Shown here in pieces: positions 21,136 through 63,891 of a stretch of DNA of 64,000 bases (the stretch's first letter is position 1; every line of letters begins with the position of its first letter). The notes under the pieces are model-generated. The model saw only the letters and a list, made by a program, of their open reading frames with translations. It searched no databases and was not told where the DNA came from. Both the position numbers and the translations under genes were made by a program. The DNA is from Styela clava (lineage: Eukaryota). The stretch is taken from positions 4,836,001-4,900,000 of the forward strand of contig NC_135250.1 of NCBI RefSeq assembly GCF_964204865.1, in the 5' to 3' direction.

Positions 21136-24100
21136 TCACAATTTTATTTCACACATGTACGCAATTAGGAGATTGCAGGATTCATCGTTGAGTTGCCACA
21201 AGTTTTCTGTGCGTACAGCCAGATGCACACAATCCTCGCCATCTCCGGAGTTGTTGGGCTCACCTTCGAACCAGGCTGTATTTTCTATAGTGGACGGCAC
21301 ACCATCAGCCCAAATAAAATCTCCTTCGTTCTTTATATCGTCCAAACCAATCCAGATTGGAGTGTTGCCGGCCACAAGAGAATGCTTTAATTCACTGAAA
21401 AAAAGAATTTACGTTACGATTACGTTGGGCAAAATATGTTAAGCTTATCAATTGAGAAAACAGAATTTTACATTTAGACTGTTTGTTTTTGGACACGTTT
21501 AGTGGCCATAACGATCGTTTCAAAATTTTGTTGTTATTGTTATTTTCTTTCGTCATTATCATTAAAAAATCGCTTTTCTCTTCGAAAACTGGACCAATTG
21601 CTTTGGAATTTTCAGTGGTTCAAGATTGATTTTTTTGCCAGAAGGCTATTACTTTCATTTATTCCTGAATTTTCTATGAATCTTATGAGATCTAATATTT
21701 CATCCAAAATTGCGCTGTATTTATTTTCAATTATGGGAACACGGTTTTTAATCCGCCAAGCGTGACGGCTGACTGTGGAAATTCTTGCGACTGAAAACCC
21801 GGAACTTTTTGAGGGTACGGTACCGGTAACGTCAAAGGTAAACCCTGCTTCGCTCTAGTCCACGTGTCCATATATTTGAGCGTTGCTCTCTTGTTTCTAG
21901 AAAGCAATCGTGAGTCAGCTGACAATCGACAATCTTCTGGGGAATTCCTAATAACACCCGCTTCCAGATGAAGTCAAGCCCCTGCACCACAAATCAAATA
22001 CTTCTTTAGTCGAGTCGCAAATTAGAATGCTCAAACACATTTTTGAATACAACGTATATATGTACATTTTGTTGAATTTCAAAATTTGCCTGCTGCTATA
22101 TCGAGTACGTCTAAATTTGCAATTTTATTTTTAAATATTACTCAAAAATTAGAATATTTTAGCGCAGTGGTACACAAAGAAATATGAGTGATTTTTTCAA
22201 ACTGAAACCGGGCAGAGATGAGGAAAAAGAGTTGACCTTCTGCCTTTATTATTAGGTCCATATGTTTACCAACTTTAAAAAGACATAAAGTACATATAAC
22301 GATCACGAAACTAATTTTTATTTGAAAGCAGCATTTTTTTCGTGTAAGTGCGCCGTGCGTTTTTTCCCTGGTAATATGGCGCCGCACGAACAAAAAGTTT
22401 GGGAAATGCTATTCTAACGTATTAGATGAAGATGATTGAATTTAAATTTTATTTACCTTCGAATTGCTGCAGCCCGAATACCAACTGATGCCAGATTAGC
22501 CGAGTATTTTTGACAGTTTTCTTTAGCAGTTGCATAGTTGACATTATCGAGAAACAATTTATAATGCAAGTTATTACTCGCTTTGAACCAAGTCCTGAAT
22601 TTCACGTTTTGTTTCAGTTGCATTATGAATTCTGAAAACGGTAAAAGCAAGGGTTTCATTTCTACACCTGGGAAAGTTGTTTTCTTTTCTAAAGTTACGT
22701 TTTTACCAGTCTTGGGTAGAATTTCTGAAACCTCTTACTATAAAACAGCCGTGAATCAACGGACAATCGGACTTTCGAGTAGGGCTGTGCATTTACGAAA
22801 TTTCAGAATCGATTAAAACATTTTTTTTCGACCCGAACAGAATCTGGAATACTTGGAAGATATTTGAATTAAAAAAATCGAGTCAATCACTGAGATAAGT
22901 CTCACTGGTCTCGATTCTTTTATTCTACTTTTATGTATGAGGCACAAGACAATCAGCCACTGCTAACTTACGATATGTAAAAAGTTCCTATTTTGAAAAG
23001 ACTTATATATATTTAGATATATATATTTCTGTTTCGGCATTTTCTACCCAATTTAGTACATTGTGGGTGAGGAGAAGGGATTTGGACTCAAGATATGCAC
23101 ATTTTACGTTATAAACGTTAGGCCATCGCGTTCAACTAAATGCTATGAATTGAATCAAAGCTGAATATTAATTACCTTCGGTATCAGTAGTTTCGCAAGA
23201 TCCCTCAGATATCAAACGACCGTTCATCAATTTTCGGATACATAACCCATCTGTGTGATTGACATAATGATTGAATGATGAAAGATTGAAGACTAAACTC
23301 TCTATGAGGTCTAAATGTTTTGGGGAAGTTGTTCAGTTCTAATAGAAGCTACTAGATACGCATACGGATCCACTGACCCGGGGGTGGCCAACTCGCGACT
23401 CGAGAGCCGCATGCGGCTCTTGCACCGGTTTCATGCGGCTCTTTTCGTCTTGTTTATTCTAAGGAAAAATATCTTGCTAATTACTATTCTTCACGTTTCA
23501 ATCCAACATATTATGACTCGTTGCGCGTTTTTTTTATGTCGAAAACACAAGAGCGCCTTCATTCACTTAACTGTACAATTGTCCATTATAACGATACAAT
23601 TGCATTTATTGGTGTGAATAGCGTTTATTGCAAGGCCTGAACGTTTCGTCCTTCTAACTTACAAAGGCATATCTGCTGTTCATGTGTGTTATTATTTATA
23701 ATGTGGCTCTTGGCTGTAATATGACACAAAATGTAGCTATCGATCTCTGACTGGTTGGCCAGCCCTGCACTAGCCGCTAGCGCAAGGGCATTGAGGAAGG
23801 ATTGCGACTTAGTCACACATAACCTCATCTCATATCTCCTGTTGTTGTTGTGAAAAAATCTCCGTCACAACTAATCAACCAAAAGGTTTCGAATATTTAT
23901 TACTTGGGGCTGCTAGAACGAAATGTTTTTTTTTTCAATTTACGCTAAAGTTTTGCTGGTTTTTATAATTCACCGACACACGTTAATATGACATTCGCCA
24001 TTCAGTACAATTTTTCTATCACCAACACTTATTGACATAACAGTGGCCATATATTTCATTTGACCTTCTGTTTCATATTTGAACATTTTTCATTATTTTG

Positions 24101-25387
24101 ATAATTGGGATCATAACGTCATATTCATATTGCATTCGTTGCAATTCTTATAAAATTATCATTTACTGACATTACGGTGGCCGTATCTTGCTCGGTATTC
24201 GACGTTTGACCTGTATAATCATTGTTTTAATAATAATCATCACAGAATATAAGAGCCTACCGGTCGCCCACGATCGTTTAGGTATCCGTTGGTTTCGCTC
24301 CTGACAAGGCCTTGTACAGTAGCAGCCACTGATATTTAACGACATGTAAGTCACTGCTAAGTTTGAAAACCCCGTACTGAAGCGAACGCGCCGTGGCAAA
24401 ATTTTCTTATCAAAGTTAGTTAGAATTCTGATTTTTTTTTTAAAAACTCCGGAATCTTCTTGTAATAGAGTGGGCCACGGTAACCTATCTGCTTAATCCG
24501 TTGGATTTCAACCTATGACATCGTATGTTGAAATCTCGAGTTAAAATTCCGTGCCCACCCGGGTGTCATAAATTGCAATCCCGGTCTGGGAAGATTAAGC
24601 TATGGTTTACCTATAGGCTTATCCATACGTCCTGGTTTAGCTGGGACAATGGATGTTAATGGGGGGAGTCTATTTATCGCTGATTTGCGACTCACATCAC
24701 TACTCCAGTAAGAGAATGAGAAAACTACTGTCATAACTATTATATGTTTAATATTTCAATTCATTATCTAACCTTAGCCGTACTGCCATTAAATTATCAA
24801 AAATGCCGACAAACAGCGCGTTTTCCAATGATTAGAATATCAATACTATTCATAAGAGTTGTATATACTAAGCCTCGTAATTGAACCAAAGGTTTGTCCA
24901 ATTCTTTGTCTTTTTTAAAATATGATAAGCCTATCCTTACCCAACAGTGACTGCATGTGCACAGCTTTGTTCGGAGGTAATGACGTACGAGTACGTATTA
25001 TATAAAAACAATGAACGACTGTCAACAAAATTGATTTTTATTATACAAAATACTGGGTACTTATGTAGTATGTGAACCAAGATGGCGGACACCGGAACGT
25101 AGTATGTGTACCAGGTTAAAGGTCATTAATTTCAGGTACAAATACAACGGGAGTCACTTGGCTAGTCCCTAAACTTGTAATAGAACTAAAATAAGAAAAA
25201 AATTGAAATAAAATTATGGCCTAACCTTAATCTGGTACACATACTACGTTCCGGTGTCCGCCATCGTGGTGCACATACTACGGGAGCGCCAAAAAATGAA
25301 GGTTATTGTATAATTCAGCTTACCTTGTTTTGCTGAACAGGCTAAAAGTAAAATGGCAATGACAAGAAAAATTAGATATAATTTCAT
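21136..25387 (-). CDS. CTL-C: secreted C-type lectin, EPN motif (4 exons, ~190 aa)
   Basis: Exons 25387-25324 (MKLYLIFLVIAILLLACSAKQ), 23250-23176 (DGLCIRKLMNGRLISEGSCETTDTE), 22631-22457, 21394-21136 join in frame (573 nt). CRD has WIGLDD, WFEGEPNN, EDCV, WQLND. An alternative in-frame acceptor near 22724 is possible. Confidence 0.85.
22160..22412. mobile_element. Dispersed MITE-like repeat (inverse copies at ~25976-26200 and ~57078-57300)
   Basis: The reverse complement matches GCAATTCCCAAATTTTTTGTTCGTGCGGCGCC...AAAAAATGCTGCTTTCAAA. Ends approximate. Confidence 0.6.
23379..23767. mobile_element. hAT-type MITE
   Basis: CGGGGGTGGCCAAC...GTTGGCCAGCCCTG termini, flanks CACTGACC/CACTAGCC. Absent from the paralog near 54620. 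Confidence 0.7.
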
Positions 25388-28300
25388 TTTGGTGTATATT
25401 GCTAATAATAATTCTCGCTAAATTGTTTTCTGCAAAATAGACCACCCTCATTTTTACTAATGAAAAAAAAAATTGAAATTATATTACACGCTATCGGGTC
25501 CTTAGCTATTTTATAATACAGTTTCGATTCAATACTCCCTACAACCTCGCTAAAAAATATAACCAATAAATTTCTAGAATAGTAATTAATGTAAAATGCT
25601 ATAGTGTCATTGATGAAGCATCGCGCTCGAGCTATTTCCTCACCTCAGCTTAAAATGCCAATATGATTTCCTTGTACAATAATAATAAAGCGCCATACAA
25701 TATGATGGGGGTTATTGAATAAAAAACATGTCATCAACGTTCATTGCCCTAGGAAGATAAAACACGCGATAGATGAGCAATAAGATCTAAATCTGTTCGT
25801 CATTACGAAATACAAATCTCTACCAATCTTCTATAACGAACATTATTCTCTTCTAAGTTGCAGAAGCGAACATTGTTCAGTGATGTTTTGATCCCACACG
25901 GATTTATCTTTGTCGCTCATGATGTTGTTCTATGATTTTTTAGCATGTTACATGAGGCCTACTTTTATTATAGACCAGCAATTCCCAAATTTTTTGTTCG
26001 TGCGGCGCCAAATTTTCAGGGAAAATCTCACGGCACACTTACTCGAAAAAAATGCTGCTTTCAAAGAAAACTCATTTCTGTGATCGCTAATGTGTACTTT
26101 ATGCTATTTAAAGTTTGTGAACATGTATGACTATCGAAAAATTGCAAAAGGTCAACTCTTCTTTTTCATCTCTGCCTGATTTTCTTTTGTTAGGCTAAAC
26201 ACTCATGTTCGCTAAATTCGGTTCAGCTGATAAATAAACAGCACGGAGTGAGGTTCACGTAGCCCTTAGCATATTATGATTTTCGCCACCATTCTAGTTT
26301 GCGAGACTCAGAAGATAAACTGAGAAACATGTTTCAGCTATTACTAACTATAGCAAAGACAGGTCATGTTCGAAAATATGACTTCAATAAAAAAAATTTA
26401 AAAATTCACCTCGACCTTTGACAGAAAGAAAAAAAATGGCGGCGGTTCGAAATTTATGTCTGAACAAATTCGAATAATTTACTATTCGATTCGACATGAC
26501 CAGTTCTATTTGTAATCGAGCAAGGGGCTTTTGTCCACAATATGAGTCTTTGAACGAGTGGAAAACAAAAATTAAAAAGTAATATTGATGACGTTGGCCG
26601 TTTTTTGCCAACGAATATTCGAAGATAGAGCCGTAATTGAATCAAGGAAAATGACGTGGAAGCTTCTTGTTCGTTGCCCAAAATGTATATTGGAATTAGT
26701 GCTAGGCATTTTTGAAAACCTGGTGATTTCAGAATTGAATTGAATATTTTTTTCGAAATGGATCTCGAAGATTTTCAACTGTATACTATGTGACATGTTT
26801 CATCAATATCTCACAAGAAAGAAAAGAGTCATATTTCGAAATTACGTTGTAAAAAGATGGCTTCAATAAAAAAAAATAAGGAATTAAGATCAACCATTTA
26901 TCTCTGATTCGAAACTCCCGCCTGAACCGGTTCGATAATTTTCGATTCGATATGCCCAGCCCTAATTGGAATGTGCTTCAATCAATTTCCACCTTGTAAT
27001 AAAGTCGATTTCTCGGGATTTACATGTCGAGAACTTTACGATCATATCAAATATTCTCCGATAAAAAATGACTGAACTTATCTTTATATACAATTATATA
27101 TAAAATTTAGCCTCCAAGTAACGCAGAAGCATTTCCTTGTATGAAAACTGACACATGAGAGTTCAAAATTTTCCCTTCACTACCCTCGTATCAAACATGG
27201 CGAATATTCGGTTTCTACTCAGCCAATATGACTCAACAAAACACACGAATGGTAGGTTGTAATGATTTCCGTGTCCGATGATTGAGTAAGTCTCCATTTA
27301 GCATGATTTGAATATGAATTGTATATATATGATCTAAAGAAATTCCTACTCTATACTTCCGTTATGTATACACTCATTAGATATAAATTCATACCGTCTG
27401 TGACATAGGACGCAAGAGGTGTAGTTTTCCATTAGTGTAGGATTGAGACCCCACATCAGATCGGCATGTTTTAATTGTGTTACGCTTAACCAGCATAAGA
27501 ATTGAACTACAGCTCAATTAATGTGTGTAGTAGGTAGGCCTATAGTTGTTTTATGATAGTGAATCCTTGCATACAGCGACTTGAGGTGAAATTCTGGATC
27601 AAGATTAGTGACATACAAGGGGAATATGACGTACCGACATAGAGATTATTTAATTACGTTGAATCCAAAACAATCGAGTAAAGAATGAAATAATTTGGAG
27701 TGTAAAAAGCCTTGTTTATGGTCTTATGCAAGGTTTTTTTTACCAGAGACTCGGCCTACTTAGAGGACTATGAGCGTTTCTCTAAAAGCCACAAACGCCT
27801 TCACTATGTACGATAGGCGGTGACTATACTGATTTAAAGTAAATTGGCAGTGATCTGTCTCCATTTTTGACTTTATTATTTTGCTCTATTGTTTTTAGTA
27901 GTATTGTTTAGTAGTATGAAAAACGACTGATAGAAGCGTGTTATTAGCAAACTTAGGTGTTTTAATGAAGCACAAAGGCTGACAGTCTTTTGAAGAGTAT
28001 CGCGCGCGAATCAGCAAAGTTTGAAAACCACTCGTCTAATGATTTACCATCGAAACTGGTAAAAAGTTGTTTCTTCAACATGAAGGCTGTGATCAAAATA
28101 TTTCTTCTGATTTTACTTTTACAAACTACAAACAGCCGTGTCAATGGTATGAATTTGATCTGGTAAACTTTAACTTTCTTGTACCTTGAAGTATCGATTA
28201 CCGGTTTCCTAGTTATAAAATAGTTATATCAGTGGCATTCAATCAGGGTTCCACCAGTACAGTCCAGGGTTCCGCAAGTTTACTTTCAGTTCCGATAGTT

Positions 28301-28757
28301 TGTATTATGAAATGAATATTGTTTAAATATAAATACACTGGTATATGAAATGTGTTCCACAAGTGTTCTGTGAATGGTACAAGGGTTCCTCGAGTCTCCG
28401 GAATTTCATTGTTGTTCCGTTCCAATAAAAATGTTGTAATACATTGAATTATATAATAGTGGCCATAGGTTGAACATTTGTATTCGTTTTTTTTCGATAT
28501 CTTCATTGTATTGGAATTTTACAGACCAAAAATAGCGGAAATAACAATGCGTCACATACAAAGCGCAATACAGTGACAGCTTATAAAATGCCAATCTTAA
28601 CGGGGACGACATCCGCTATTGCGTTTCATAGATCACAAAGTTGACTCAACATTCGAACTTTAATATGTACCAACTTACAGAGACTCGTTTTTGTGTATTA
28701 TTTTCCACCCACCATGTCATACACTCATTAGCGGTTTCTGCTTTTTATAAAACTTCA

Positions 28758-31700
28758 ATGTATACTTCTCATTTACCGCTTTTAACTAAACTTTCAGGTA
28801 TGCTTTTTTCAAATGTTGTAGTAACATAAACCTTCATTTGAAAAAGAGTTTGTAGTTGAAGAATACAAGCGTTGAAATTTGAAAATAAATGCTAAGGAGG
28901 TCCTTAGATGGAGTTCTCACCTCTTTCGATAGAACAATGTCTATTCACACTTTTGTCAACAATTACCATGTGTAGCTCATGATAGAAGCGTTCATTTTTA
29001 TTGTATTTTAATTGCAGGAATCAATTTTTATGGTCAGAATTTATTTAGACACTGGAAATTCCGATTTAATATCACAATATTTTTATAATTAGCTCGTATT
29101 ATATTTTATCATTCAGGAAACTCGAACGAACCCTCCTGTACTGAGGACAGAGGCAAGAAGACTTTTCAAATAAACTTTTCCTCGGTGAGCGTAGCATTAT
29201 GCAATATACTTTCATACTAGGTCTTTTATGCAATGATACAGTAGTAAAAAATACGGCAACAATATATCAATACTGATACAATAACTAGAAAATAATAAAA
29301 GACCCAAGTACATACCGAACACAGCAGGAAGGAGACTAACGTTAGCACCTCCTTCGGCTTCATGTCGATTGTTTACGTTCGCGCGTCGAAAGCGATTGAG
29401 CGTAAAGATCACGTGACCAACAAGAAACCACTCGGGGCGCAATTGTACAAAATTTGCGATGAAACTGGAAGCCTATAAGAAATGTTAGAAATATAAAAAT
29501 AATAACCATTTGGCCTAACCCTAACTACAGAAAATTAGTAACCGATAGGCTTGGTTGGCACTTAATAGGAGAAGCAATTTTTCGCCTGTGTGAACTCCAA
29601 GAATTTTCCTGAACTTATATTTCGATCGTATTGTTTCATCGTTATCGTTAAGACAAAGTCAAGCAAAATCTAATTAACGATATTAGCCCACGAAAAGATG
29701 TAATCGAAATGGTATTTCCCAAACAATATTATAGGTTTAGATTAAAAAAAACTTAGATTGTAATTGTATCACAAATTTATTATATTCTAACACTTTGATT
29801 TTCTTTCTTCTCAGGTTGCTGATCTGGAAAGTAAGTGTAAAACATATTATTTTGGGAACGAAAATGAAAATCGGTCTTCTACAGAGTGGGGCAAATAAAC
29901 CTCCGCATTCTATTTAATTAGAAACTGCCTTTTTAATCACCTTAACTTATTTAATAAATCTGGGATGATAATACAACGCTACCTCCAAAGAAAGTATTGG
30001 TTCGCTTCAGCGTAGACGTGAAACAGATACAGGAAGTTTGACTTAACAAGTTTAAACAGGCTATGCGGTAGGCTAACAAATTGGCGCTCCGGCAGTATGT
30101 GTACCAAGATGACGCAAAATCTGAACCCTAACCTGGTACACATACTATGTTCAGGTTGTGCGCCATCTTGGTACACATACTTCGGGAGCACCAACAAACC
30201 CTATATTTTTTATCGTTAATATTTAAAAGCTTGACATGTTTGAAACTTCACAATAACGCAGATTAATATTCATTAGGTATCATTGATATTAATTTGTTTT
30301 GAGCATTCTTCTGAAATCAAATTACAAAAACAATTCAAATAATTCAAAATGAGATAAAAGAATATAGGCTACAACTTCCAAAGTGCTATGTTAATTTACT
30401 CAGAAAAGTTGGTGATGCCTGAATTCCGTAAGTTTCTAGCCAGGTAATACTACTAATGCAGTTTTCATCGAATGTCGATAAAGTAATCCAACGAATAAAT
30501 ACTTTAAAACCATTTTAAAAATATAAATTTTGTCCAGAAAAATTAAGAAACGATCCTGACCTACAACGTTACTTGGAAGAGAAACTATCGACAAATGCAG
30601 AAGAATATGAAATTACAACAGGTTATTATTATATTTGTCTTCACTTATTTTTGCTCAAATATTTAGTACTTTCTCTCATGAACCTGGGATTTCGATTTTG
30701 TTTTTCACATAAGGAAATTTGCTCAATGCAAGGTCCATAGCACTCACTCAGAAGTGTCATTAGTTAGTGAGGCAATAATGAAATATAATGTAGAATTGGA
30801 ATTGACGCGAGACATGAAGAATAGGATTGTCCTGTTTATCTTTGAGGAGAGGAAAGTCGATTAGTTGGCTTAATCAAAGGCCGTACCACGGTCTCTCGCC
30901 CTGTCCATGTCGGGTATGAGATTGGTTAGGCAGTTATTTGTTTTCAGATATTTCGACTCGATGTTCGGTTGCATCATTTCAGGTGATATGTTGTATGACA
31001 CAGTCATAGTAAAAAGCCATTTTTAACTACTCGATTATTCATCAAAATAGTAACTTTCCTGTTTAAAAACTACAATACGAGTTAAGGCCTACTTTTCAAA
31101 CAATGAGCTCTTCAGCTCAAACAATACACACACATATATATATATATATATGCCTACTAGTCTTGCTTTATGATTGGCGAATGATTTATTATATTTTACA
31201 GTTCTTCAATCTATCGATCCTCAATTAAGTGAGACAACGGCTACTTCTCCACAGATGGGGACCACTCATGCTGAAATGACAACAGAAAAATCAACTACTG
31301 GTATAATATATATGTTTACTGTCTATGTTTAGATGCTGGAAGCCTATCGAGAACTTGAATTTTGTGTACGTTATATGTCGGTGCATTTTTCTCGTTTGAA
31401 AAAGAAGAGCCCCCGTCGCTAAATTAATCAAAATGTCTGGGGAAGTTTTTCTAGAATCTGACATTTTTGGCAAATCTGCTTTTTCGTGTCAGGAATTTAT
31501 TAATTCAAATCAATATCCCTCTCTGCTTACAGCTTTTTTTCATTCAATATAGTACGATTATTCGCGATACTCGTCTAACCATTAAAAATAAGACTTCGTA
31601 TCAAATGAAGAATTCGTATCATTTTGAATCTATTTTCCATATATATGTGCAGACGACCTTAAGACATGGAATAAATCAAGCAGCAATTATTATTACAAAC

Positions 31701-32546
31701 TATTTCGCAACCCAGTCAACTACACAACTGCTAAAGCAAATTGTCAAAAGTTAGGAGCCGATCTTGCATCAGTGGGAGTGAGGAATGCTACCGTCCGCAG
31801 GTTAGGTGCTATTTGTTGCTAACATCAAGTAGACACATTACTTATATTTTAAATACATTCGGATCCCAAATAATCAGGTCAGTGGAGTTGGAATTTAGAA
31901 TTTGGCATGTTTTCTGCAGCCGGATTTAGAATTCCTGTATCCGGGGTCAAAGTTGGGGTCGAAATTTTAGAATTCCAATGGTAATAAAATCAGTTGAAAT
32001 TTTTTGCAGAAATATAGAAAAGCATTGATTTTTCCAAGCGTTTTAAACAGTCTATTGAAATAAAAATAATTTTGTGGCCCCTGAAGCCGACAACCTTAGA
32101 CCACCCTGGTTTAATTTAGGTGTTCATGGATAAGTATTATGGTGATAATAAAAACGAAAGAGTATCAATTATACTACGGCGAATATAAAGGTAGGAAATT
32201 CCTCCTCGTTTCAGAAATGTTGATTTGGGTCTTTAATTGTTTGATTACCTAACCTAAATTATATATATTTTATTGCAGCAAAATACTTCAAATGGTGAAG
32301 TCAGGGGAAAAAGATACTTGGGTTGGTCTGGATGACATCAATGAAGAAGGAAGATTTGTGTGGGCTGATGGCGTTATTTTAATAAAAGAGAATGCATATT
32401 GGAATGTTGGACAACCAGACGACTATGAAGACAACGAAGATTGTAGCGAATTCAGTGGTTATCAAAGTTGGAAGTTAAATGACGCTCGATGCTCAGACCA
32501 CCAATATTACATTTGCGAAAAAAGACCGTTTTTTTGGGATCAGTGA
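28758..32546 (+). CDS. CTL-D: C-type lectin, QPD motif, with microexon-encoded N-terminus and Ser/Thr-rich stalk (~250 aa)
   Basis: Exons 28758-28797 (start uncertain), possibly 29018-29032, then 29117-29184, 29815-29830, 30404-30427, 30538-30621, 31202-31300, 31653-31800, 32279-32546, all in frame. CRD has WVGLDD, WNVGQPDD, EDC, WKLND. CRD exons are secure; the first exon is not. Confidence 0.75.
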
Positions 32547-32563
32547 ATGAGATTCCTATAAAG

Positions 32564-33119
32564 CAGGGGTGGGCAACCTTTTTCGGCTCGCGTGCCAAAA
32601 TCGACTAAATTTAAAGAAAAAATTTATCCGCGTGCCGACCAAAATTGAAAACAATGCTTAGCTACTTTCAAAGCAAAAATACACAATAATAAACCTCTTA
32701 AAAATGTACAGACAGATTCAATATCCGGGAAAATATCAGTTCAACAAATAGATTTTATTAATTTTCTTATTCTACATCAGTGAGACTTCTGCTGCTGCAT
32801 TACCGCTGGTAGAGATTTTACATTGAGTATATTTTGTAACTTTCAAAGAAATACACGAACTACTGATTTCATCTTTTAGGCTACTCCTGTTACGAGACTC
32901 AATAAAGTCCATAACTGAGAACAGAGATTCACAAGCATATGTAGATGAAAACATGAAGAGTAATGCAGTTGCAAAGTTTTTGAGACACTAAAAATTCTCG
33001 GGAATGGAATCCCAATCAACCAATAGTTCGTTTTTTGCACTTCTCCCTCGTATACCCTTCTCTAATCGCTTACATTTCTTTTGAAATTTGGCACGCGTGC
33101 CAGGGGTTGCCCACCCCTG
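32564..33119 (-). mobile_element. Internally deleted hAT (Buster/Charlie-like) element with transposase C-terminal relic
   Basis: TIR CAGGGGTGGGCAACC, flanks CTATAAAG/CTATAGAG. Relic FSSTYACESLFSVMDFIESRNRSSL (32772-32954) resembles the hAT dimerisation region. Confidence 0.87.
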
Positions 33120-33699: not shown

Positions 33700-35544
33700 T
33701 ACATTTACCCGCAATGCGCGATGCGATAGAAATCGACATATGTGATAAATATTTATTTCGATAATGAAAGTGGATTACTTCGTTAAATATAATATTAATA
33801 TTTTGTCGAAGTATTACGTTATTTCAAATAAGGAAAATGAAGGCAAACTTCAAAGATCCAACGCAAACAAAGGAACTCATTTCTTAATTTTCAACATTTT
33901 TCACTTTCCACGGCCATAAAACAAATAATAAAATGATAAATAAACATAATAATAAAGAATAAATAAATGATAAATAAATAATGTCTCGAAACTTCATAAT
34001 CAAGCCTCGTCCAAAGACGTACCTCCCACATCTGGTTCGAAACGTCCGTAGTCCAAAACGTCTGTATGTCATGTCATCACCATTTGAAAACAAGAGTAAT
34101 AAGCTTAATTCATATAGTAAAAACTACGACTGAAAATCTGTTTATTGCCCGTTTATGTAATATGCCATAAGTGTGAGAGTGTTACTTATTCTCGCCATTT
34201 TAAAATCACTTTTAGAAATGTATTTTTAGAAAAAAAAATGTGTAAAGAAAATATATATGTAAATATGTATTTTCAAAGTTCGGTGTAATGTCTTATATTA
34301 GGATAGCATTTCCGAATTTACCCGGGGAAAGGATAAGACGGCTTAATCATATGGCGTTACAAATAGTATTAACATTTTATTTCTAACAGCAATACTGCTT
34401 TATGTAGATCAGCTTATATTTCATATAATATATAAGCTTCAAACTGACATTTGTTCCTTCAGATTAAACGCCATTATTCACGTAAAATCACAGATCGGGC
34501 AATATTCGAAAACATTAGCACGGAAAGGCTCGAATGTTCAAATATTAAAATTTATCAAATTTAAGTTCAAGACCACCTTGATATCATTAGTAACTTTCCA
34601 TTCAACATGATTTTCAACAAAGCATAGCAAGCTTTAAATCAAACCGTATCACAATGCTGGTTTAAGACTCCTGACAGTGGCGGTTCAATCAAATTAGGAA
34701 AATCTGACACATTTATTTGTTGAAAGTTTTATCTTTAAAAGTGTTTTATTCAATATTCACAATATTTGATCCCATTTTTCTTCATCTCTGTTGAACTTTA
34801 TCACATTTTTGTACTTGTGTATTTATTTGTTCTGTACTGCAAGTTAGAAATAGAGAATTATGTTTTCCATTACTTTCGTTTATTTTTTCATTCAACATTT
34901 TGTCAATTTAAATCAAATTAATGTGTATATATAAAACAAACTATAAGTTATGCATTACTACTTTATAGTCTGCATTCCAAAGTATATTATTTGTTTTCTA
35001 AATCAACAAACATTACTGAAATATCGAAACCAAAATCGTTTTGGTAATAAGAGAGAAGCACGCTGAAAATCAATCAATCAACGAATTCGAACGAGCAAAC
35101 GAACACAGCAAAAGAAAAACAAAATTAAACTTATGCCTTCGCCTAAATGGGCAACCGCGCTGGACCAGGTCAACCGCGCTGGACCATTTGGTCTACTGGT
35201 CAGTAGGAGTGGGCATTTTCGAATACCTGATAATTTTAGTTTCCAATATTTCCTTCTGAATCGATTCGAATTACCGGTCAAGTAAAAGGGAATGTTTGAA
35301 TTATTGTTAATTAAATCATCAAACTAAGCAACAAATTGATCCCTACAACGTGCTGCTCGGCGCCGCTACACCTATAACCCTCCCCTTAGCACGCTTCAGC
35401 ACCTGCAGTTTGAACGTTCAAGAAACGGAATAAAGACTTCTTTCTATTGAAAGTGAAAAAATGATTATCATAACATAAAGTGATTAAATATTTTACAACA
35501 GTAAGCGCAGCGATGGCTTCAAACCAAATAAGGCAAAATAAAAA

Positions 35545-36177: not shown

Positions 36178-36240
<63 letters not shown>

Positions 36241-50020: not shown

Positions 50021-50206
50021 GAATTCCTGCTTTTGTCTAATAACGAAGAACATGAAATGACATTAAAAAAAAAAACTTAAATCGGCATAAAATCTTGGCC
50101 CAACCCTAACCTGGTACACACGCTATGTTCCGGTTTACATACAACGGGAGTACCAAAATATCAGCCAATCACAAAAGAAATGAGAATAACAACAGAATCA
50201 AGTATT

Positions 50207-53200: not shown

Positions 53201-56200
53201 ATGTAATCATTTTTGAAGAAATTGTTCGTTATAAAAAAGATTTCTACTCGAGTCAGTAAACAGTTAAAATAAATCGTAACCGGTAACCATCTAAAATCGG
53301 TTAACCGATTAATCGTTAACCATTCCCAGCCCTACCTATTACACGTCGAAGATGTTTCTGATTGAAAATATTTTACAATTATTATCGTGTATTTCAATTT
53401 TGTCGAGATAGTTTGGGCGGCCTCGGCAATAAATCTAAAAGCAAATTGTGTAAATTATTGTGTACAACCTTTCATTTTGATAGTGATCGAACATAAGAGC
53501 ACATTTTCTCATTTCTTGCAATAAGCAGTTTAAGTTGACGGTATTAATTTATAAACAAAAATAAAATCATAACAGCCGATATGAAAAATCAGCGCCGACT
53601 CGCAATATAAAAGAAGATCTCCGGTCCTAATTCTCTTTTATTGGCCGATGGGAATTTGGGAATAAGGTTTACTCATTTGATAATGACAGTGATCGCGTAA
53701 ATATATTTGCGTTTTACTTAATAAACGTATGGTGTCGTGAGCAATATAAAAACTAAATTTATAATAGCTGCCCTGCCACTAGCCAATCAACTATCTGTCA
53801 TGCCATTAGTCCTCTTTTTCATGTGCGTGTGCTCATTTTCGTACATAACTTTCTCTCTTAGATTTCAACTTTTAACGCATCATCCTCTCACCTCCTCCGA
53901 TCACCGTCCTCCCAATCTCCACGGTCTTCGCTTAAGTAGTCAAATATTACGTCCGAATTTTGTGGGGGCTTGGAACGGATAAATGTATTTTCAGGTAAAA
54001 AGCGTCCGTACTTACGAAATTTTCTACTTGCAAAGGGGCTTAGAACAAATTAATTTTGTTCCAATTACGGAAGCCCCTTCGTAAGTAGAAAATTCTGTGA
54101 GGTACACATGATAAGAAAAGAGAGCAGAGAAATAACAAATGAAAACTACAAATTTTTCATATTCAGAGACTTTCGTAGGCGGAGTTTGTATTTGGCCCTT
54201 TCGTGAAAAAGGTTGCACACCCCTGAGCTAGGCCATCGCGTTCAACTAAATAACACGGGTCGAGTTAACGCCGATTATTAATTACCTTCGGTATCAGTAG
54301 TTTCGCAAGATCCCTCAGATATCAAACGACCGTTCTTCAATTTTCGAATACATAATCCATCTGTGTGATTGAAATAATATTGAATGATAAAAAGGTTAAA
54401 GACGAAACTGTGTATGAAGTCAAAATGTTTTGGGAGGTAGTTCAGTTTTGATAGACGCTACTAGATTTCTAGAACGAAAGCATGTCTTAGGATTGTTTAT
54501 ATATAATCGGACAGAAAGTGGACCGTTTGCAAATCTATTTGTGTTAGTGTGCAGCAAGAATTTTTAATAGGATAGTCATGTTTATTCCTGCTGCAGCATC
54601 CTTGCATTATATGCATACGGATCTAACAGAGGAAGGGTATTGAGAAAGGATAGGGGCAAAAAATACTAATCTACTAACCAACTTATCAATTAATAGGTTT
54701 TGAATTTGTATTACACGTGGATAAAGTGCTGCAAGAACGAAATGTCATATTTCTTAATTTACGCTAAAGTTTTGCTGGTTTTTATAATTCACCGACACAC
54801 GTTAATATGGCATTCGGTGAAAATTTTCTATAATCAACACATTGACATAACAATGGCCATATCTTTCCTTTGACCTTCTGCTTCATATTTGAACATTTCT
54901 CATTATTTTGATAATTGGGATCATAACGTCATATTCATATTGCATTCGTTGTTATCATTTACTGACATTACGGTGGTCGTATCTGTTATCTGACCTTATG
55001 TTTCATATTCCAAGCGTTGCTCATTATTTAGATAATTGGGATTATACCCTCACTCACACACCCTCTGCGTAAGCTTGCTCGGTATTCGACGTTTGACCTG
55101 TATATTCATTGTTTTCGTAATAAACATCACAGAATATATGAGCCTACCGGTCGCCCACGATCGTTTAGGTATCCGTTTGTTTCGCTCCTGACAAGGCCTT
55201 GTACAGCAGCGGCCACTGATATTTAACGACATGTAAGTAACTTCTAGGTTTGAAAGCCCCATACTGGAGCGAACGAGTCTTGGGTAAAGTGGAACGCATA
55301 GGATTTGAACCCAAGATGTGTAACCTGTGATGCCAACACATTTTGGTTCATTGCTCCGACCCAAGACATATTATGAATATTAGTATTTAAACTAAATAGA
55401 ATACTGATCACGTTTTGCGCAGTGGCAAAATTGACCTATCAAAGTTAGTTAGAAAGTTTTGTAATGAAGTGGGCTGCGGTAACCCATCTGGTTAATCTGC
55501 TGGACTTTAACATCGCTGGTTGAAATATCGAGTTGAAATTTCGTGCCCACTCGGGTATAATAAATTGAGTATACCCAATTGCCTATAGGCAATGCCGGAC
55601 TGGATTAAGCTATGATAGCTCTTTAACTTGGTTTACCATACGTCTTGGTTTGGCTGGGACAGTCCCGATTTTGACAAGCTGTCCAGTCCGATAGACCCAA
55701 ATGTCCCGGTCATGTAGTATGGAAGTCATGAATATTTTTTTTATTTGATATCGATACAAAGTATCTTTTTAATCTTAATAAGGCAGTCTATTTATCGCTG
55801 GTTTCCGACTCACTTCCCTACTTCAGTAAGTGAGAGAGAACTATTATATGTCATAATTATTATATGTTCAATTTTCCAATTCATTATCTAATCTTAGCCG
55901 TACTGTCATTAAATTATCCAAAATGCCGAAAAAGAGCGCGTTTTCCAATGATTAGAATATCAATACTATTCATAAGAGTTGTATATACTAAGCCTCGTAA
56001 TTGAACCAAAGGTTTGTCCAATCCTTCGTTTTTTTATATTTATATGGTAAGCCTATCCTTACCCAACAGTGACTGCCTGTGCAGAGCTTTGTTCGGAGTT
56101 ATTGACGTACGAGTACGTATTATATAAAAACAATGAACGACTGTTAACAAAATTGATTTCTATTAAACAAAAAACTGGGTACTTATGTCGTATGTGAACC

Positions 56201-56507
56201 AAGATGGCGGACGCCGGAACGTAGTACGTGTACCAGGTTAGAGTTAGGCCATTGATTTCAGGTACAAATACTACGGCAGTCACTTGATTAGTCCCTGAAC
56301 ACGTAATAGAACTAAAAGAAGGAAAATTGGAATAAAATTATTGCCTAACCTAACCTAACCTGGTACACATACTACGTTCCGGTGTCTGCCACACATACTA
56401 CGGGAGCGCCAAAAAATGAAGGTTATTGTATCATTCAGCTTACCTTGTTTTGCTGAACAGGCTAAAAGTAAAATGGCAATTACAAGAAAAATTAGATATA
56501 ATTTCAT
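50207..56507 (-). CDS. CTL-H: secreted C-type lectin, EPS motif (5 exons, ~189 aa)
   Basis: Exons 56507-56444, 54360-54286, 52054-52016, 51032-50888, 50453-50207 join in frame (570 nt). CRD has WIGL, WHEGEPSN, EDCV, WYLND. Confidence 0.85.
51168..51820. mobile_element. hAT-type MITE
   Basis: GGTTGTCCAACC / GGTTGGACAACC termini, flanks CTTTAAAG/GTTTAAAG. Confidence 0.7.
52625..53334 (+). mobile_element. Deleted hAT (Ac-like) element with BED zinc-finger relic
   Basis: TAGGGCTGG...CCAGCCCTA termini, flanks CTTATTAC/CCTATTAC, subterminal TTAACCG repeats, and a frameshifted MQRASDIWKYF..SVKCHL from ~52849. Confidence 0.8.
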
Positions 56508-59500
56508 TTTGGTATATATTGCTTTAAATATTAAATCTCGCTAAATTGTTTTCTGCAAAATAGACCACCCTCATTTTTTTTTAAAATATTACACACTATC
56601 GGGTCCTTAGCTATTTTATAATACAGTTTCAATTCAATACTCCCTACAACCTCGCTAAAAAATATAACCAATAAATTTCTAGGAGAGATTATTGTAAAAT
56701 GATATAGTGTCATTGATAAAGCATCGCGCTCGCGCTATTTCCTCCCGTCAGCTTAAGGCCAATATAATTTCCTTGTACAATAATAATAAAGCGCCATACA
56801 ATATGATGGGGGTTATTGAATAAAAAACATGTCATCAACGTTCATTGCCCTAGGAAGATAAAACACGCGATAGATGAGCAATACAGATCTAAATCTGTTC
56901 GTCATTACGAAATACAAATCTCTACCAATCTTCTATAACGAACATTATTCTCTTCTAAGTTGCAGAAGCGAACATTGTTCAGTGATGTTTTGATCCCACA
57001 CGGATTTATCTTTGTCGCTCATGATGTTGTTCTAAGATTTTTTAGCATGTAACATGAGTCCTACTTTCATTATAGACAAGCGGTTCCCAAATTTTCTGTT
57101 CGTGCGGCGCCAAATTTTCAGGGAAAATCTCACGGCACACTTACACGAAAAAAATGCTTCTTTCGAAGAAAACTCATTTCTGTGATCGCCAATGTGTACT
57201 TTATGCTATTTAAAGTTTGTGAACATGTATGACTATCGAAAAATTGCAAAAGGTCAACTCTTCTTTTTCATCTCCGCCTGATTTTCCTCTGTTATGCTAA
57301 ACACTCATATTCGCTAAATTCGGTTCAGCTGATAAATAAACAGCACGGAGTGAGGTTCACGTAAGCCTTAGCATATATATTATGATTTTCGCCACCATTC
57401 TAGTTTGCGAGACTCCGAAGATAAACTGAGAAACATGTTTCAGCTATAACTAACTATAGCAAAAACGAGTCATGTCCGAAAATATGACTTCAATAAAGAA
57501 AATTGAAGAATTCACCTCGACCTTTGGCAGACAGAAAAAAAAATGGCGGCGATTCCAAATTTATGTCTGAACAAATTCGAATAATTTACTATTTGATTCG
57601 ACATGACCAGTTCTACTGGTAATCGAGCAAGGGGCTTTTGTCCACAATCTGAGTCTTTGAACGAGTGGAAAACAAAAATTAAAAAGTAATATTGATGACG
57701 TCTGCCGTTTCTTGCCAACGAATATTCGAAGATAGAGCCGTAATTGAATCAAGGAAAATGACTTGGAAGCTCCTTGTTCGTTGCCCAAAATGTATATTGG
57801 AATTAGTGCTAGGCATTTTTGAAAACCTGATGATTTCAGAATCGAATATTTTTTTCGAAATGAATCTCGAAGATTTTCAACTGTATGTGACATGTTTCAT
57901 CAATATCTCACAAGAAAGAAAAGAGTCATATTCCGAAATTACGTTGTTAAAGCATGGCTTCGATAAAAAAAAAATAAGGAATTTACCTCAACCCTTTATC
58001 GGTGATTCGAAACTCCCGTCTGAACCGGTTCGATAATTTTCGATTCGATATGCCCAGCCCTAATTGGAATGTGCTTCAATCAATATCCATTTTGTAATAA
58101 GTCGATTTCTCGGGATTTAAATGTCGAGAACTTTAGGATCATATCAAATATTCTCCGATAAAAATGACTGAACTTATCTTTATATACAATTATATATAAA
58201 AATGAGCCTCCAAGTAACGCAGAAGCAGTTCATTGTATGAAAACTGACACATGAGAGTTCAAAATTTTCTTCCACTACCCTCGTATCAAACATGGCGAAT
58301 ATTCGGTTGCTACCCAGCCAATATGACTCAACAAAACACACGAATGGTAGGTTGTAATGATTTCCGTGTCTGCTGATTGAGTAAGTCTCCATTTGGTATG
58401 ATTTGAATATGAACTGTATATATATATGATCTACAAAAATATTCTTGATCTATACTTCCGTTATGTATAAACTCATTAGATAGCCTATTCACACCGTCTG
58501 TGACAATGTTCGCAAGCGGTGTAGCTTTCCATGGCTTAATGTCTTACCAGAAGAAAACTTTAGTCTAGGATTGAGATCTGAAGTCTGATAAGCATGTTTC
58601 AATTGTGTTACGCCTAACCAGCATAAGAATTAAACTACAGCTCAGCTTACGTGTGTACTGGGAGTAGTTTTATAATAGTGAATCCTTGTATATTGCGACT
58701 TGAGGTGAAATTCTGGATCAAGATTAGTGCCATAAAAGGGGAATATGACGTACCCGACGTAGAGATTATTTAATTACGTTGAATCCAAAACAATCGAGTA
58801 AAAATTGAAATAATTTGGAGTGTAAAAAAAAAAGCCTTGTTTATTGTCTTATGCTAGATGTTTTTTAACAGAGACTCGGCCTACCTAAGGGGCTATGAGC
58901 GTTTCTATAGAAGCCACAAACGCGCCTTCACTATGTACGATAGGCGGTGACTATATTGATTTAAAGTAAATTGGCAGTGATCTGTCTCCAATTTTGACTT
59001 TATTTCTTTGCTCTATTGTTTTTAGTAGTATTGTTTAGTAGTATGAAAAACGACTGATAGAAGCGTGTTATTAGCAAATCTAGGTGTTTTAATGAAGCAC
59101 AAGGGCTGACAGTCTTTTGAAGAGTATCGCGCGCGAATCAGGGAAGTTCGAGAATCACTCGTCTAATGATTTACCATCGAAACTGGTAAAAAGTTGTTTC
59201 TTCAACATGAAGGCTGGGATCGAAATATTTCTTCTGATTTTACTTTTACAAACTACAAACAGCCGTGTCAATGGTATGAGTTTGATCTGGTAAACTTTAA
59301 AACTTTCTTGTACCTTGAAGTATTGATTACCGTTTTCCTAGTTATAAAATGGTAATATCAGTAGCATTAAATTAGGGTTCCACCAGTACAGTCCAGGGTT
59401 TCACTAGTTTACTTTCAGTTCCGATAGTCTGTATTATGAAATGAATATTGTTTAAATATAAATACACTGGTATATAAAATGTGTTCCACAAGTGTTCTGT

Positions 59501-59886
59501 GAATGGTACAAGAGTTCCTCGAGTCTCCGGAATTTCATTGTTGTTCCGTTCCAATAAAAATGTTGTAATACATTGAATTATATAATAGTGGCCATAGGTT
59601 GAACATTTGTATTCGTTTTTTTTCGATATCTTCATTGTATTGGAATTTTACAGACCAAAAATAGCAGAAATACCAATGCGTCACATACAAAGCGCAATAC
59701 AGTGACAGCTTATAAAATGCCAATCTTAACGGGGACGACATCCGCTATTGCGTTTCATAGGTCACAAAGTTGACTCAACATTCGAACTTTAATATGTACC
59801 AACTTACAGAGACTCGTTTTTGTGTATTATTTTCCACCCACCATGTCATACACTCATTAGCGGTTTCTGCTTTTTATAAAACTTCA

Positions 59887-62267
59887 ATGTATACTTCTCA
59901 TTTACCGCTTTTAACTAAACTTTCAGGTATGCTTTTTTCAAATGTTGTAGTAACATAAACCTTCATTTGAAAAAGAGTTTGTAGTTGAAGAATACAAGCG
60001 TTGAAATTTGAAAATAAATGCTAAGGAGGTCCTTAGATGGAGTTCTCACCTCTTTCGATAGAACAATGTCTATTCACACTTTTGTCAACAATTACCATGT
60101 GTAGCTCATGATAGAAGCGTTCATTGTTATTGTATTTTAATTGCAGGAATCAATTTTTATGGTCAGAATTTATTTAGACACTGGAAATTCCGATTTAATA
60201 TCACAATATTTTTATAATTAGCTCGTATTATATTTTATCATTCAGGAAACTCGAACGAACCCTCCTGTACTGAGGACAGAGGCAAGAAGACTTTTCAAAT
60301 AAACTTTTCCTCGGTGAGCGTAGCATTATGCAATATACTTTCATACTAGGTCTTTTATGCAATGATACAGTAGTAAAAAATACGGCAACAATATATCAAT
60401 ACTGATACAATAACTAGAAAATAATAAAAGACCCAAGTACATACCGAACACAGCAGGAAGGAGACTAACGTTAGCACCTCCTTCGGCTTCATGTCGATTG
60501 TTTACGTTCGCGCGTCGAAAGCGATTGAGCGTAAAGATCACGTGACCAACAAGAAACCACTCGGGGCGCAATTGTACAAAATTTGCGATGAAACTGGAAG
60601 CCTATAAGAAATGTTAAAAATATAAAAATAATAACCATTTAGCCTAACCCTAACTACAGAAAATTAGTAACCGATAGGCTTGGTTGGCACTTAATAGGAG
60701 AAGCAATTTTTCGCCTGTGTGAACTCCAAGAATTTTTCTGAACTTATATTTCGATCGTATTGTTTCATCGTTATCGTTAAGACAAAGTCAAGCAAAATCT
60801 AATTAACGATATTAGCCCACGAAAAGATGTAATCGAAATGGTATTTCCCAAACAATATTATAGGTTTAGATTAAAAAAACTTAGATTGTAATTGTATCAC
60901 AAATTTATTATATTCTAACACTTCGATTTTCTTTCTTCTCAGGTTGCTGATCTGAAAAGTAAGTGTAAAACATATTATTTTGGAAACGAAAATGAAAATC
61001 GGTCTTCTACAGAGTGGGGCGAATAAATCTCCGCATTCTATTTAATTAGAAACTGCCTTTTTAATCACCTTAACTTATTTAATAAATCTGGGATGATAAT
61101 ACAACGCTACCTCCAAAGAAAGTATTGGTTCGCTTCAGCGTAGACGTGAAACAGATACAGGAAGTTTGACTTAACAAGTTTAAACAGGCTATGCGGTAGG
61201 CTAACAAATCGGCGCTCCGGCAGTATTTGTACCAAGATGACGCAAAACCTGAACCCTAACCTGGTACACATACTATGTTCAGGTTGTGCGCCATCTTGGT
61301 ACACATACTTCGGGAGCACCAACAAACCCTATATTTTTTATCGTTAATATTTAAAAGCTTGACATGTTTGAAACTTCACAATAACGCAGATTAATATCCA
61401 TTAGGTATCATTGATATTAATTTGTTTTGAGCATTCTTCTGAAATCGAATTACAAAAACAATTCAAATAATTCAAAATGAGATAAAAGAATATAGGCTAC
61501 AACTTCTAAAGTGCTATGTTAATTTACTCAGAAAAGTTGTTGATGCCTAAATTCCGTAAGTTTCTAGCCAGGTAATACTACTAATGCAGTTTTCATCGAA
61601 TGTCGATAAAGTAATCCAACGAATAAATACTTTAAAACCATTTTAAAAATATAAATTTTGTGCAGAAAAATTAAGAAACAATCTTGACCTACAACGCTAC
61701 TTGGAAGAGAAACTATCGACAAATGCAGAAGAATATGAAATCACAACAGGTTATTGTTGTATTTGTCTTCACTTATTTTTGCTCCAGTATTCATTACTTT
61801 CTCCCATGAACCTGGGAATTCTATTTTGTTTTTCACATAAGGAAATTCGCTCAATGCAAGGTTCCGAGCACTCACTCAGAGGTGTCATTAGTTAGTGAGA
61901 CAATAATGAAATATAATGTAGAATTGAGATTGACGCGAGACATGAAGAATAGGATTGTCCTGTTTACCTTTAGGAACAGGAAAGTCGATTAGTTGGCTTA
62001 ATCAAAGGCCGTACCACGGTCTCTCGTCCTGTCCATGTCGGGTATGATATTAGTTAGCCAGTTATTTGTTTTCAGATATTTCGACTTGATGGTCGGTTGC
62101 ATCATTTCAGTTAATATGTTGTATGACACAGTCATAGTAAGAAGCCATTTTATCGAACTCATTTTTAACTACTCGAATATTTACCAAAATGGTAACTTTC
62201 CCGTTTAAAAACTACAATACGGGGTAGGGCCTACTTTTCGAACAATGAGCTCTTCAACTCAAACAAT

Positions 62268-62298
<31 letters not shown>

Positions 62299-63891
62299 GG
62301 CCCACTAGTCTTGCTTTATGATCGGCGAATGATTATTTATATTTTACAGTTCTTCAATCTATCGATCCTCAACTAAGTGAGACAGCAGCTACTTCTTCAC
62401 AGATGGAAACCACTCATGCTGAAATGACAACAGAAAAATCAACTACTGGTATAATATATATGTTTACTTCATATATATTTAGGTGCTGGCAGTCCATCAA
62501 GAATTGAATTGGATTTTGTGTACATTATATGTTTGTGCATTTTTCTAGTTTAAGAAGGCACCCGTCGACCTCCGTTTTTTTTTTTTGTTAAAGAAATCAG
62601 AAGGCTAAAAAAATTCAAATAGAAAAATAGAATGAACAATATTTTACCCTATCAATTTCGGGTCGAGGGTCCTTATCCTGTAAACACATTAGTTATATTT
62701 AATTTTTGCGGAAAGCGCCCATCCGAAAAAAACACCTTCAACCACTGCCAAAACAAGTGCTAAAACTCAAAATGTCTTGGCATGTTTTTCTAAAATCTCA
62801 CACTTTTGGTAAATCCCCTTCTTGGCGTCAGGAATTTATTCAGTCAAATCAATATCCCCCTCCGCTTACAGCTTCTTTTTGTCCAATCTAGTACGATTAT
62901 TCGCCATACTCGTCTGACCATCAAAATAAAATAAAAATTTGTATCATATTGAATCTATTTCCCCATATATGTACAGACGACCTTAAGACATGGAATAAAT
63001 CAAGCAACAATTATTATTACAAACTATTTCGCAACCCAGTCAACTACGCGACTGCTAAAGCAAATTGTCAAAAGTTAGGAGCCGATCTTGCATCAGTGGG
63101 AGTAAGGAATGCTACCGTCCGCAGGTTAGATGCTATTTTTAAAAACATCAAGTAGACATATCACTTGGCATATGTAGTGCTTAGAATTTAAAATACATTG
63201 GGATCTCAAATAATTATGAGAATGGAGCCGCCGTCGGATTTTTAAACTTTTCGGGTTTTGGAATCGTAGTCAAAACCCAGAATTTTCCGTAGGAATCAAT
63301 GGAAGATTGCATACGCCAAAGCTTATGTTATTAGCAAAGCATTAATAAATGTTGATTTTTCTCGAAACTAGAGTCGAAGCCGAATCGTTTTCAGACCGGA
63401 ATCGACATAAATTGTGAATTTCCGCCATATCCTTGTGGATAGTGAGTTGTAAAAATTCAATATGCAAACTACCTTATTATTTTTGAGTATAAGAGATATT
63501 TTGCAAAATTTAAACATTTCATAACATTTCTGATTTTTGAAGAGCATTTTTGAAAAGTGATGCCAAAGGATTTACTTCATTTCATCAAGGATTTTAATTG
63601 TTTGACTAAATTATTTGAATTATATATAAACATTATTGCAGCAAAATTCTTCAAATGGTGAAGTCAGGAGGAAAAAGGACTTGGGTTGGTCTTGATTACA
63701 TTGAACAAGAAGGAAGATTTGTTTGGGCTGATGGCGTGAATTCAACAAGAGAGAATACAAATTGAAATGCTGGACAACCAGACGACCATAGAAAAAACGA
63801 AGATTGTGGCGAGTTCAGTCGTTACATGAATTGGAAGTTAAATGACGTCCCATGTTCATTGTTCCAATATTATATTTGTGAAAAATCTTAA
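59887..63891 (+). pseudogene. CTL-I: paralog of CTL-D, QPD motif, premature stop in CRD
   Basis: Exons 59887-59926, (60147-60161), 60246-60313, 60943-60958, 61532-61555, 61666-61749, 62350-62448, 62977-63124, 63642-63891. TGA at 63763-63765 replaces the conserved Trp four codons before QPD. Confidence 0.85.
62266..62294. repeat. (CA)n microsatellite
   Basis: Direct observation. The paralogous position near 31125 has a shorter CA run followed by (TA)n. Confidence 0.9.

Follow-up and report, generated by a model that had tools for sequence, protein, structure and literature searches.

Evidence for exon shuffling generally comes from ancient domain architectures. Hybrid genes and pseudogenes are also found in the tandem clusters of vertebrate lectin-like and Ig-like immune receptors (Ly49/NKG2 and KIR), where they arise by unequal crossing-over and intronic conversion in a birth-and-death pattern. 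Among C-type lectins, the hallmark of the carbohydrate recognition domain (CRD) is a set of four conserved cysteines together with a calcium-site-2 motif (EPN or QPD, followed by ND), QPD marking galactose-type and EPN mannose-type binding. Class 1-1 shuffling, as treated in sections of Patthy (2021; PMC8001218), involves symmetrical phase 1-1 modules that recombine within introns and are prone to exon skipping. Here we describe a cluster of soluble C-type lectin genes in chromosomal DNA of the sea squirt Styela clava, to which the matching RefSeq proteins belong. The window, by which we mean the whole 64 kb stretch analyzed (positions 4,836,001–4,900,000 of its contig; 35% GC, no N), contains seven of these genes, designated C to I, and an eighth, J, lies 2 kb beyond its end. 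Exon shuffling is plainly recorded at this locus, in a form that is not unusual; nothing points to a dedicated diversifying mechanism, and no new mechanism comes to light. Our literature search retrieved no paper on this cluster; supplements outside the search may hold gene lists.

As in class 1-1 shuffling, so far as those sections of Patthy (2021; PMC8001218) describe it, the cluster has phase 1-1 exons whose lengths are multiples of three (3n), a signal-peptide boundary in phase 1, intronic recombination and modules prone to skipping. It differs from the shuffling described there in being made of close paralogues within 50 kb whose intron homology still survives, and in having tiny modules (39–99 nt) rather than whole folded domains, with a CRD split by a phase-2 intron. 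The gene products resemble collectins and other necked soluble C-type lectins in their signal peptide, short neck and single C-terminal CRD with EPN or QPD plus ND. Unlike collectins, however, the genes have no collagen repeat, so that they are not collectins, and they carry a Cys-x14-Cys hairpin before a neck of 13–16 residues. Unlike those of the Ly49/NKG2 and KIR clusters, the proteins are small and predicted to be secreted rather than being membrane receptors.

Within 50 kb, one can still see the donors, the recipients and the joins in their introns, and the annotation treats the chimaeras as intact genes. A single duplication of a head-to-head pair seems to have yielded two hybrids in one step. 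Gene G, to judge by its motifs, would have moved a galactose-type head onto a scaffold that J pairs with a mannose-type head. The locus is a handy natural case for how small class 1-1 modules get exchanged, and it also bears on whether the pairing of a scaffold with a head makes a difference to recognition in an invertebrate closely related to vertebrates.

Parts of the same gene have different nearest relatives

The cluster displays exon shuffling by intronic recombination: its exons are symmetrical and 3n in length, the nearest relative differs from one part of a gene to the next, and the homology of each part runs on into introns. Phase 1-1 holds for the hairpin exon (75 nt), the neck exon (39 nt, 48 nt in F), an 84-nt exon and the 99-nt stalk exon carried by D and I. 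The signal exons, of 61–67 nt, finish in phase 1; CRD-A, the first exon of the CRD (145–148 nt; 175 nt in C), has phase 1 at its start and phase 2 at its end. Because all exons between the signal and the CRD are of class 1-1 and CRD-A starts in phase 1, their exchange keeps the reading frame. An earlier note on this DNA, made from the sequence alone, had listed these five sizes (75, 39, 48, 84 and 99 nt) as phase 1-1, correctly, together with one of 24 nt; no separate 24-nt exon was found among the gene models, the sole candidate being a further donor, inside the 39-nt neck exon, that could serve as an alternative.

Exon by exon, the genes group in conflicting ways. Hairpin exons are 96% identical between C and H and 95% between G and J, and only 54–60% across these two types, while the necks of E, G, H and J are 95–97% identical to one another. 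For CRD-A, the close pairs are D and I (97%), G and I (94%), G and D (91%) and H and J (90%), with all other pairs at 60–72%. Last exons are 97.5% identical in H and J, 83% in G and I, 81% in G and D, and 80% in D and I as well as between E and either H or J. Separate trees for each exon, which the earlier note had proposed and whose congruence it had named as the refuting outcome, turned out to be incongruent. The maximum likelihood (ML) tree of the hairpin joined C with H (support 100) and F with G and J (100; G with J, 80), and the approximately unbiased (AU) test rejected a clade of H and J (p=2.5e-4). In the CRD-A tree, H grouped with J (94) and G with D and I (93), and clades of C and H (p=0.008) and of G and J (p~1e-36) were rejected. 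The last-exon tree placed E with H and J, and G with D and I (100; D with I, 94), and the same two clades were again rejected (p=0.02 and p~1e-62, respectively).

Gene G joins a J-type 5' half to a D/I-type CRD. Its two junctions lie at 45616–45640, where C/H-type sequence gives way to J-type, and at 47395–47504, where J-type gives way to D/I-type. Between 45640 and 47395, the signal, hairpin and neck exons and their introns are 79–89% identical to the 5' half of J, and from ~47504, 27 nt before the CRD-A exon, to 48801 the sequence matches I and, in part, D. The neck is 95–97% identical to those of E and H, and the CRD is of D type (CRD-A 91–94% and last exon 81–83% identical to D and I), both as the earlier note had claimed. 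Two other claims about G did not hold. The hairpin had been called F-type, whereas it matches J at 95% together with the flanking introns and F at 84% in the exon only. The signal exon had been called C/H-type; the RefSeq model starts at a J-type signal exon (45716–45779), of whose residues 76% match those of J and whose upstream sequence is common to both genes.

The C/H-type signal exon was rejected as the start of G since, in addition to the RefSeq model, the relic copy of that exon (43059–43122) has ATA where C and H have ATG. The relic belongs to a C/H-type 5' block upstream of G, one of only three long copies of this block in the genome, which is split into two parts (42495–43835 and 44745–45620) by a 0.9-kb transposable element (TE) at 43836–44744. 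It corresponds to the first 2 kb of the block in C and H, and its final stretch resembles a 5' exon that stops exactly at a splice donor (45615|GT) equivalent to the donor of the first coding exon of annotated H (54793). J-type sequence starts 20 nt further on, with a conserved acceptor lying 36 nt upstream of the start codon of G. It is possible that G has captured a C/H-type promoter and first exon.

In gene H, the 5' part is of C type, and the neck and CRD are of J type. The sharing of exons 1 and 2 and intron 1 between C and H, with distinct CRDs, had been noted before and is borne out: positions 23119–24648 match 54229–55661 over 1.4 kb of intron and exon sequence (82–96%), the homology ends 57 nt beyond the common 75-nt hairpin exon (23250–23176 and 54360–54286, 96%), and the CRD exons are only 59–60% identical. 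C-type homology stops in H at 54229 and J-type homology begins at 52079; the filler between them is TE-rich and includes, in intron 2, a 715-nt high-copy TE (52619–53335). The neck region of H is J-like up to 52079, and 48797–51119, comprising the 3' flank, the last exon and CRD-A, is 89% identical to J over 2.3 kb. H does not have the J-type intron 2 sequence common to G, E and J, which argues that at least this join is real. Between the last exons of H (50210–50453) and J (L001 2064–2307), all six differences are replacements (synonymous divergence, dS, of 0), compared with a dS of 0.13 between their CRD-A exons; the last exon may be a recent conversion tract, and the excess of replacements is not significant.

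A single large duplication in direct orientation links C and D to H and I. It spans a head-to-head gene pair over ~9 kb (23119 to ~31900 and 54229 to ~63240), with a core (24664–31418 and 55782–62567) that is 93% identical over 6.8 kb, and on the minus strand it takes in the C/H signal exon, intron 1 and the hairpin exon with the 57 nt beyond. One duplication across the C/D pair appears to explain H and the D-like 5' part of I together. In 50-nt windows, D–I identity is 90–94% from 24664 to ~31300, ~82% in the next intron and 96–98% in the CRD-A exon; beyond ~31900/63240 the two copies no longer align. The earlier note had described I as D-like at its 5' end and G-like in its last intron and 3' flank. 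Both observations stand, the last intron of I aligning with that of G (75%) and not with that of D, but the likeness to G does not extend to the last exon, which groups with D and not with G (support 94/89). Between D and I, dS is 0.065 in CRD-A and 0.39 in the last exon, a six-fold difference. The last intron of D holds a repeat fragment, and repeat-derived sequence and a TE are found on the D side of the last intron and 3' flank. A second duplicated block joins G and H tail to tail and is colinear with the 3' parts of I and J (from 62967 to a point 2970 nt beyond the window; identity is 77–81% on the G/I side and 89% on the H/J side).

The C/H-type 5' block carries a further trace of exchange. 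At C positions 26000–25614, C agrees with H at 53 sites and with G at 6, whereas at 24830–24313 it agrees with G at 63 sites and with H at 11, and the observed maximum chi-square for this switch was reached in none of 1000 permutations. C and G carry this block in opposite orientations, and the switching site patterns point to gene conversion. Taken with the incongruent trees, the AU rejections and the intron homology, this supports the claim of germline exchange, with breakpoints inside introns, that includes inverted paralogues.

Proposed history and competing explanations

We consider it highly probable that the cluster grew by local segmental duplication and was rearranged by non-allelic homologous recombination (NAHR) or gene conversion with intronic end points. 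In the order of events that we infer, a tandem cluster of secreted lectins would have been enlarged by local segmental duplication first, and non-allelic recombination or conversion inside introns would have followed; TE-aided joining is the other candidate mechanism for the joins. Three parental types are recognizable: a J-type parent with an MNL signal, the Cys-x14-Cys hairpin, the 39-nt neck and an EPN/EPS CRD; a D-type parent with a distinct signal, a set of four small exons, one of them the Thr-rich stalk, and a QPD CRD; and a C-type parent with an MKLYLIF signal, a variant hairpin and a neck fused to the CRD. G is a J-type 5' half with a D-type CRD, and so a hairpin/neck scaffold with a putative galactose-type (QPD) head; H is a C-type 5' part with a J-type neck and CRD; and I would be a recently copied 5' part of D through CRD-A with an older D-type last exon. 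The observed picture, with its block structure, exon phases, incongruent trees and exact matches to annotated proteins, fits birth-and-death evolution with class 1-1 exon shuffling and does not require a special diversifying mechanism.

Several points weigh against this account. A number of homology ends lie within 5–60 nt of splice sites, the C–H homology ends exactly at a TE terminus in H (54205–54233), and intron 1 of C contains a 0.5-kb insertion absent from H. Because TEs sit at or near them, some homology ends may reflect TE-driven intron turnover or erosion rather than breakpoints. The order and number of events are under-determined and could not be reconstructed, and since G and H both have a J-type neck, no single inversion explains both. 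The groups submitted to the AU tests were picked after the identity matrices had been seen, each from a module other than the one tested. The annotated H protein has no signal peptide. A read check of the G region (3701 nt) drew on one DNA run and on three others that we took, as a guess, to be RNA: the DNA reads probably come from the individual that was assembled and so give no independent support, and in the three possible RNA runs almost none of G, and no G transcript, was seen.

Could the chimaeras and the 93% duplicate be merged or falsely duplicated haplotypes, or mis-joins in the assembly? The copies are close together and 80–93% alike, the species is polymorphic, and proteins P0158 and P0164 of an older Styela clava annotation are not encoded in this assembly, so individuals seem to differ here. 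Yet the window is free of N and lies on a 32.7-Mb contig, unitigs built from the DNA reads cover all 30 bins of the G region and bridge both G junctions, and allelic variants in these unitigs amount to ~0.6–2%, compared with 7–20% between paralogues. The copies moreover have differing flanks and TE insertions, and G-region contigs with skips of 142 and 90 nt represent the C form of the 5' block, hence the two forms can be told apart. We regard an artefact as extremely improbable. Nearly as hard to sustain is a history of whole-gene duplication with no exchange, in which the mosaic look would come from divergence at uneven rates (exons under selection, introns turned over by TEs, exons lost). 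It would account for F, whose homology to G and J is confined to exons, and the likeness of I to G in the last intron could reflect turnover in D, given the repeat fragment there and a last-exon tree that puts I with D. It does not sit with H, which shares 1.4 kb with C and has a CRD 59–60% like that of C and 90–97.5% like that of J, nor with the introns of G, J-like at the 5' end and D/I-like at the 3' end; the AU tests reject the shared clades, and in the comparison of D with I the dS of one exon is six times that of its neighbour. Searches with tblastn turned up no remnants in H of the J-type signal or hairpin exons, and none in G of the 5' exons of the D type. We therefore judge the absence of exchange to be very unlikely.

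The remaining rival is a dedicated system of ongoing exchange, in the germline, at the RNA level or somatically (by exon skipping or trans-splicing), that would give each animal its own set of lectins. All modules are of class 1-1, one J isoform lacks the hairpin and annotated H lacks the neck exon, there are conversion-like tracts in the 5' block, and some older-annotation proteins are absent from this genome, the best last-exon matches of P0158 and P0164 here being 71% and 80%. One possible RNA contig from another animal is also in its favour. This spliced 150-nt contig (47556–47676 plus 48059–48087; run X9) has a GT..AG join at 47676/48059 and so confirms this splice for a D/G-type gene; it is 95% like G, is an exact match to none of D, G and I, and within the CRD-A exon has the letters of D at 4 listed sites and those of G at 3 others. 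Since it mixes D and G letters, it derives from a copy outside this assembly. Against such a system, the copies are 7–20% apart, so the events are old and not ongoing, 2 of the 8 genes are broken, and the CRD exons have ratios of replacement to synonymous divergence (dN/dS) of 0.26–0.74, with no excess of replacement changes. We find it unlikely. The earlier note had inferred that exchange diversifies an innate immune lectin repertoire; the exchange is supported, and the diversifying function is no more than putative, E and I being broken, F having lost a CRD cysteine, annotated H being without a signal peptide and the transcript of G having gone unseen in the three possible RNA runs.

A milder form of the same idea, that modules are still being exchanged in the population, with haplotypes bearing different chimaeras and with skipping of hairpin or neck adding RNA forms to individual scaffold/head repertoires, is possible, if doubtful. 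The missing older-annotation proteins, the D/G-mixed contig and the skipped hairpin (J) and neck (H) all point toward it. As P0158 and P0164 have no close match here, individuals or assemblies seem to differ in gene content. Another older-annotation protein, P0159, contains the 99-nt stalk module twice; P0166 is a further protein of that annotation.

Gene models and other features of the locus

For D, G, H, I and J, RefSeq proteins were threaded over the DNA with GT-AG introns and were residue-for-residue identical to it; C, F and a fuller model of H were built from paralogue similarity, with open reading frames (ORFs) and AG/GT at all joins (Table 1).

Table 1. Lectin genes and duplicated blocks, with coordinates in the window except for J
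Feature	Position	Strand	Exons or extent	Model and remarks
Gene C	21136–25387	-	25387–25324 signal (MKLYLIF...); 23250–23176 hairpin (75 nt, C/H-type); 22631–22457; 21394–21136	Paralogue-based, 190 aa, EPN, intact ORF; last exon Lectin_C E=1.2e-14
Gene D	28080–32546	+	28080–28146; 29117–29184; 29815–29830; 30538–30621 (84 nt); 31202–31300 (99 nt); 31653–31800 (148 nt, CRD-A); 32279–32546	RefSeq XP_077973104 (P0151), 249 aa, 7 exons, QPD; exact spliced mapping
Pseudogene E	35276–37572	+		Inverted partial J/H-type copy
Gene F	38935–41492	-	41492–41432 signal; 40773–40699 hairpin; 40316–40269 neck (48 nt); 39964–39817; 39190–38935	Paralogue-based, 195 aa, intact ORF
C/H-type 5' block upstream of G	42495–45620	+		Inverted relative to C; 87–94% to C, 83–87% to H (BLAST)
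Gene G	45716–48318	+	45716–45779 (64 nt, J-type signal); 46262–46336 (75 nt, hairpin); 47200–47238 (39 nt, neck); 47533–47680 (148 nt, CRD-A); 48063–48318 (last, QPD)	RefSeq P0160, 193 aa, 5 exons; exact mapping
Tail-to-tail block	47523–51119		G 3' part, intergenic region, H 3' part	Colinear with I/J 3' parts
Gene H	50207–56507	-	54886–54793 (non-signal first coding exon); 54360–54286 (C/H-type hairpin); 51032–50888; 50453–50207	RefSeq P0168, 186 aa, 4 exons; exact mapping
Gene I	59207–63888	+	59207–59273; 60246–60313; 60943–60958; 61666–61749; 62350–62448; 62977–63124; 63642–63765	RefSeq XP_077973109 (P0152), 201 aa, 7 exons; exact mapping
Gene J	L001 2061–4670 (2–4.7 kb past window end)	-		Unmixed J-type parent: MNL signal, hairpin, neck, EPN CRD
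Large duplication, copy 1	23119–32562		C 5' part, intergenic region, D	Self-BLAST
Large duplication, copy 2	54229–63920		H 5' part, intergenic region, I	Direct orientation relative to copy 1

In C, the exon at 22631–22457 (175 nt) fuses a neck-like stretch to CRD-A. An alternative signal exon for this gene ('MRLCV...' at 23828) was rejected, as it lies inside a TE insertion absent from H, and 'MKLQQV...' at 30607 was rejected as a signal exon of D because it is the end of the 84-nt exon; the 99-nt exon of D is the Thr-rich stalk. The annotated H model skips a neck exon at 52054–52016, and there is a candidate signal exon at 56507–56444; an alternative model with both is intact and encodes 189 aa. 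C and G have no open frame in the stretch corresponding to the first coding exon of annotated H ('MKQKV...'), and this exon may be an untranslated first exon. The RefSeq isoform X2 of J (P0165) skips the 75-nt hairpin exon (L001 4101–4027), an annotated example of a class 1-1 module used as a cassette.

Two genes, E and I, are broken. E retains J-type intron 2 sequence, a neck exon (36578–36616) and a last exon (37329–37572) with a TAG and a frameshift; its CRD-A exon is deleted, and it has neither a signal nor a hairpin exon. An intron of E contains a tandem repeat (35781–36304) of the 12-nt unit AACAGACAGACA, present 43 times with 95% match. I is truncated by a premature TGA (63763–63765), and a D/G-like frame runs on to 63888. 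In F, the exon at 39817–39964 encodes Phe in place of the first CRD cysteine, whose disulfide partner would be unpaired.

A motif scan of the window picked out 11 ORFs, of which 7 are lectin last exons, all between 21 and 64 kb and in agreement with the places given by the earlier note. Five of these seven matched the Pfam profile Lectin_C (PF00059) at 42–55 bits, compared with a cut-off of 22.6, and the last-exon pieces of the broken E and I (43 and 48 aa) did not match it. The calcium-site motif is QPD in D, G and I, EPN in C, F and J, and EPS in H; LND is present in all exon peptides compared, as are the conserved CRD cysteines in all but F. Gly-X-Y runs are absent from the peptides encoded by the exons of C, D, F, G, H, I and J, and a relative on another chromosome (P0138) carries a short one. 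The best solved matches of the CRDs are the DC-SIGN/CD209 family, collectin-11, CL-P1 and CEL-I, with PDB E-values of 1e-11 to 1e-8, and the hairpin module had no sequence match in the PDB. Genome-wide, there are at least 140 lectin last exons and the hairpin was found at 9 loci (E<1e-5), relatives elsewhere having both, one or neither of hairpin and neck.

One TE family with similar termini has copies or ends at 32564–33117 (3' end of D), 43836–44744 (upstream of G), 23357–23868 (intron 1 of C) and 54205–54233. A palindromic element of ~250 nt lies at ~25032–25297, just downstream of the C/H signal exon, and again at ~43150–43380 and 56180–56410; a first look gave thousands of candidates for it genome-wide. 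In the 5' part of the window, self-BLAST matched 5534–6434 to 11206–12324 and found further repeats.

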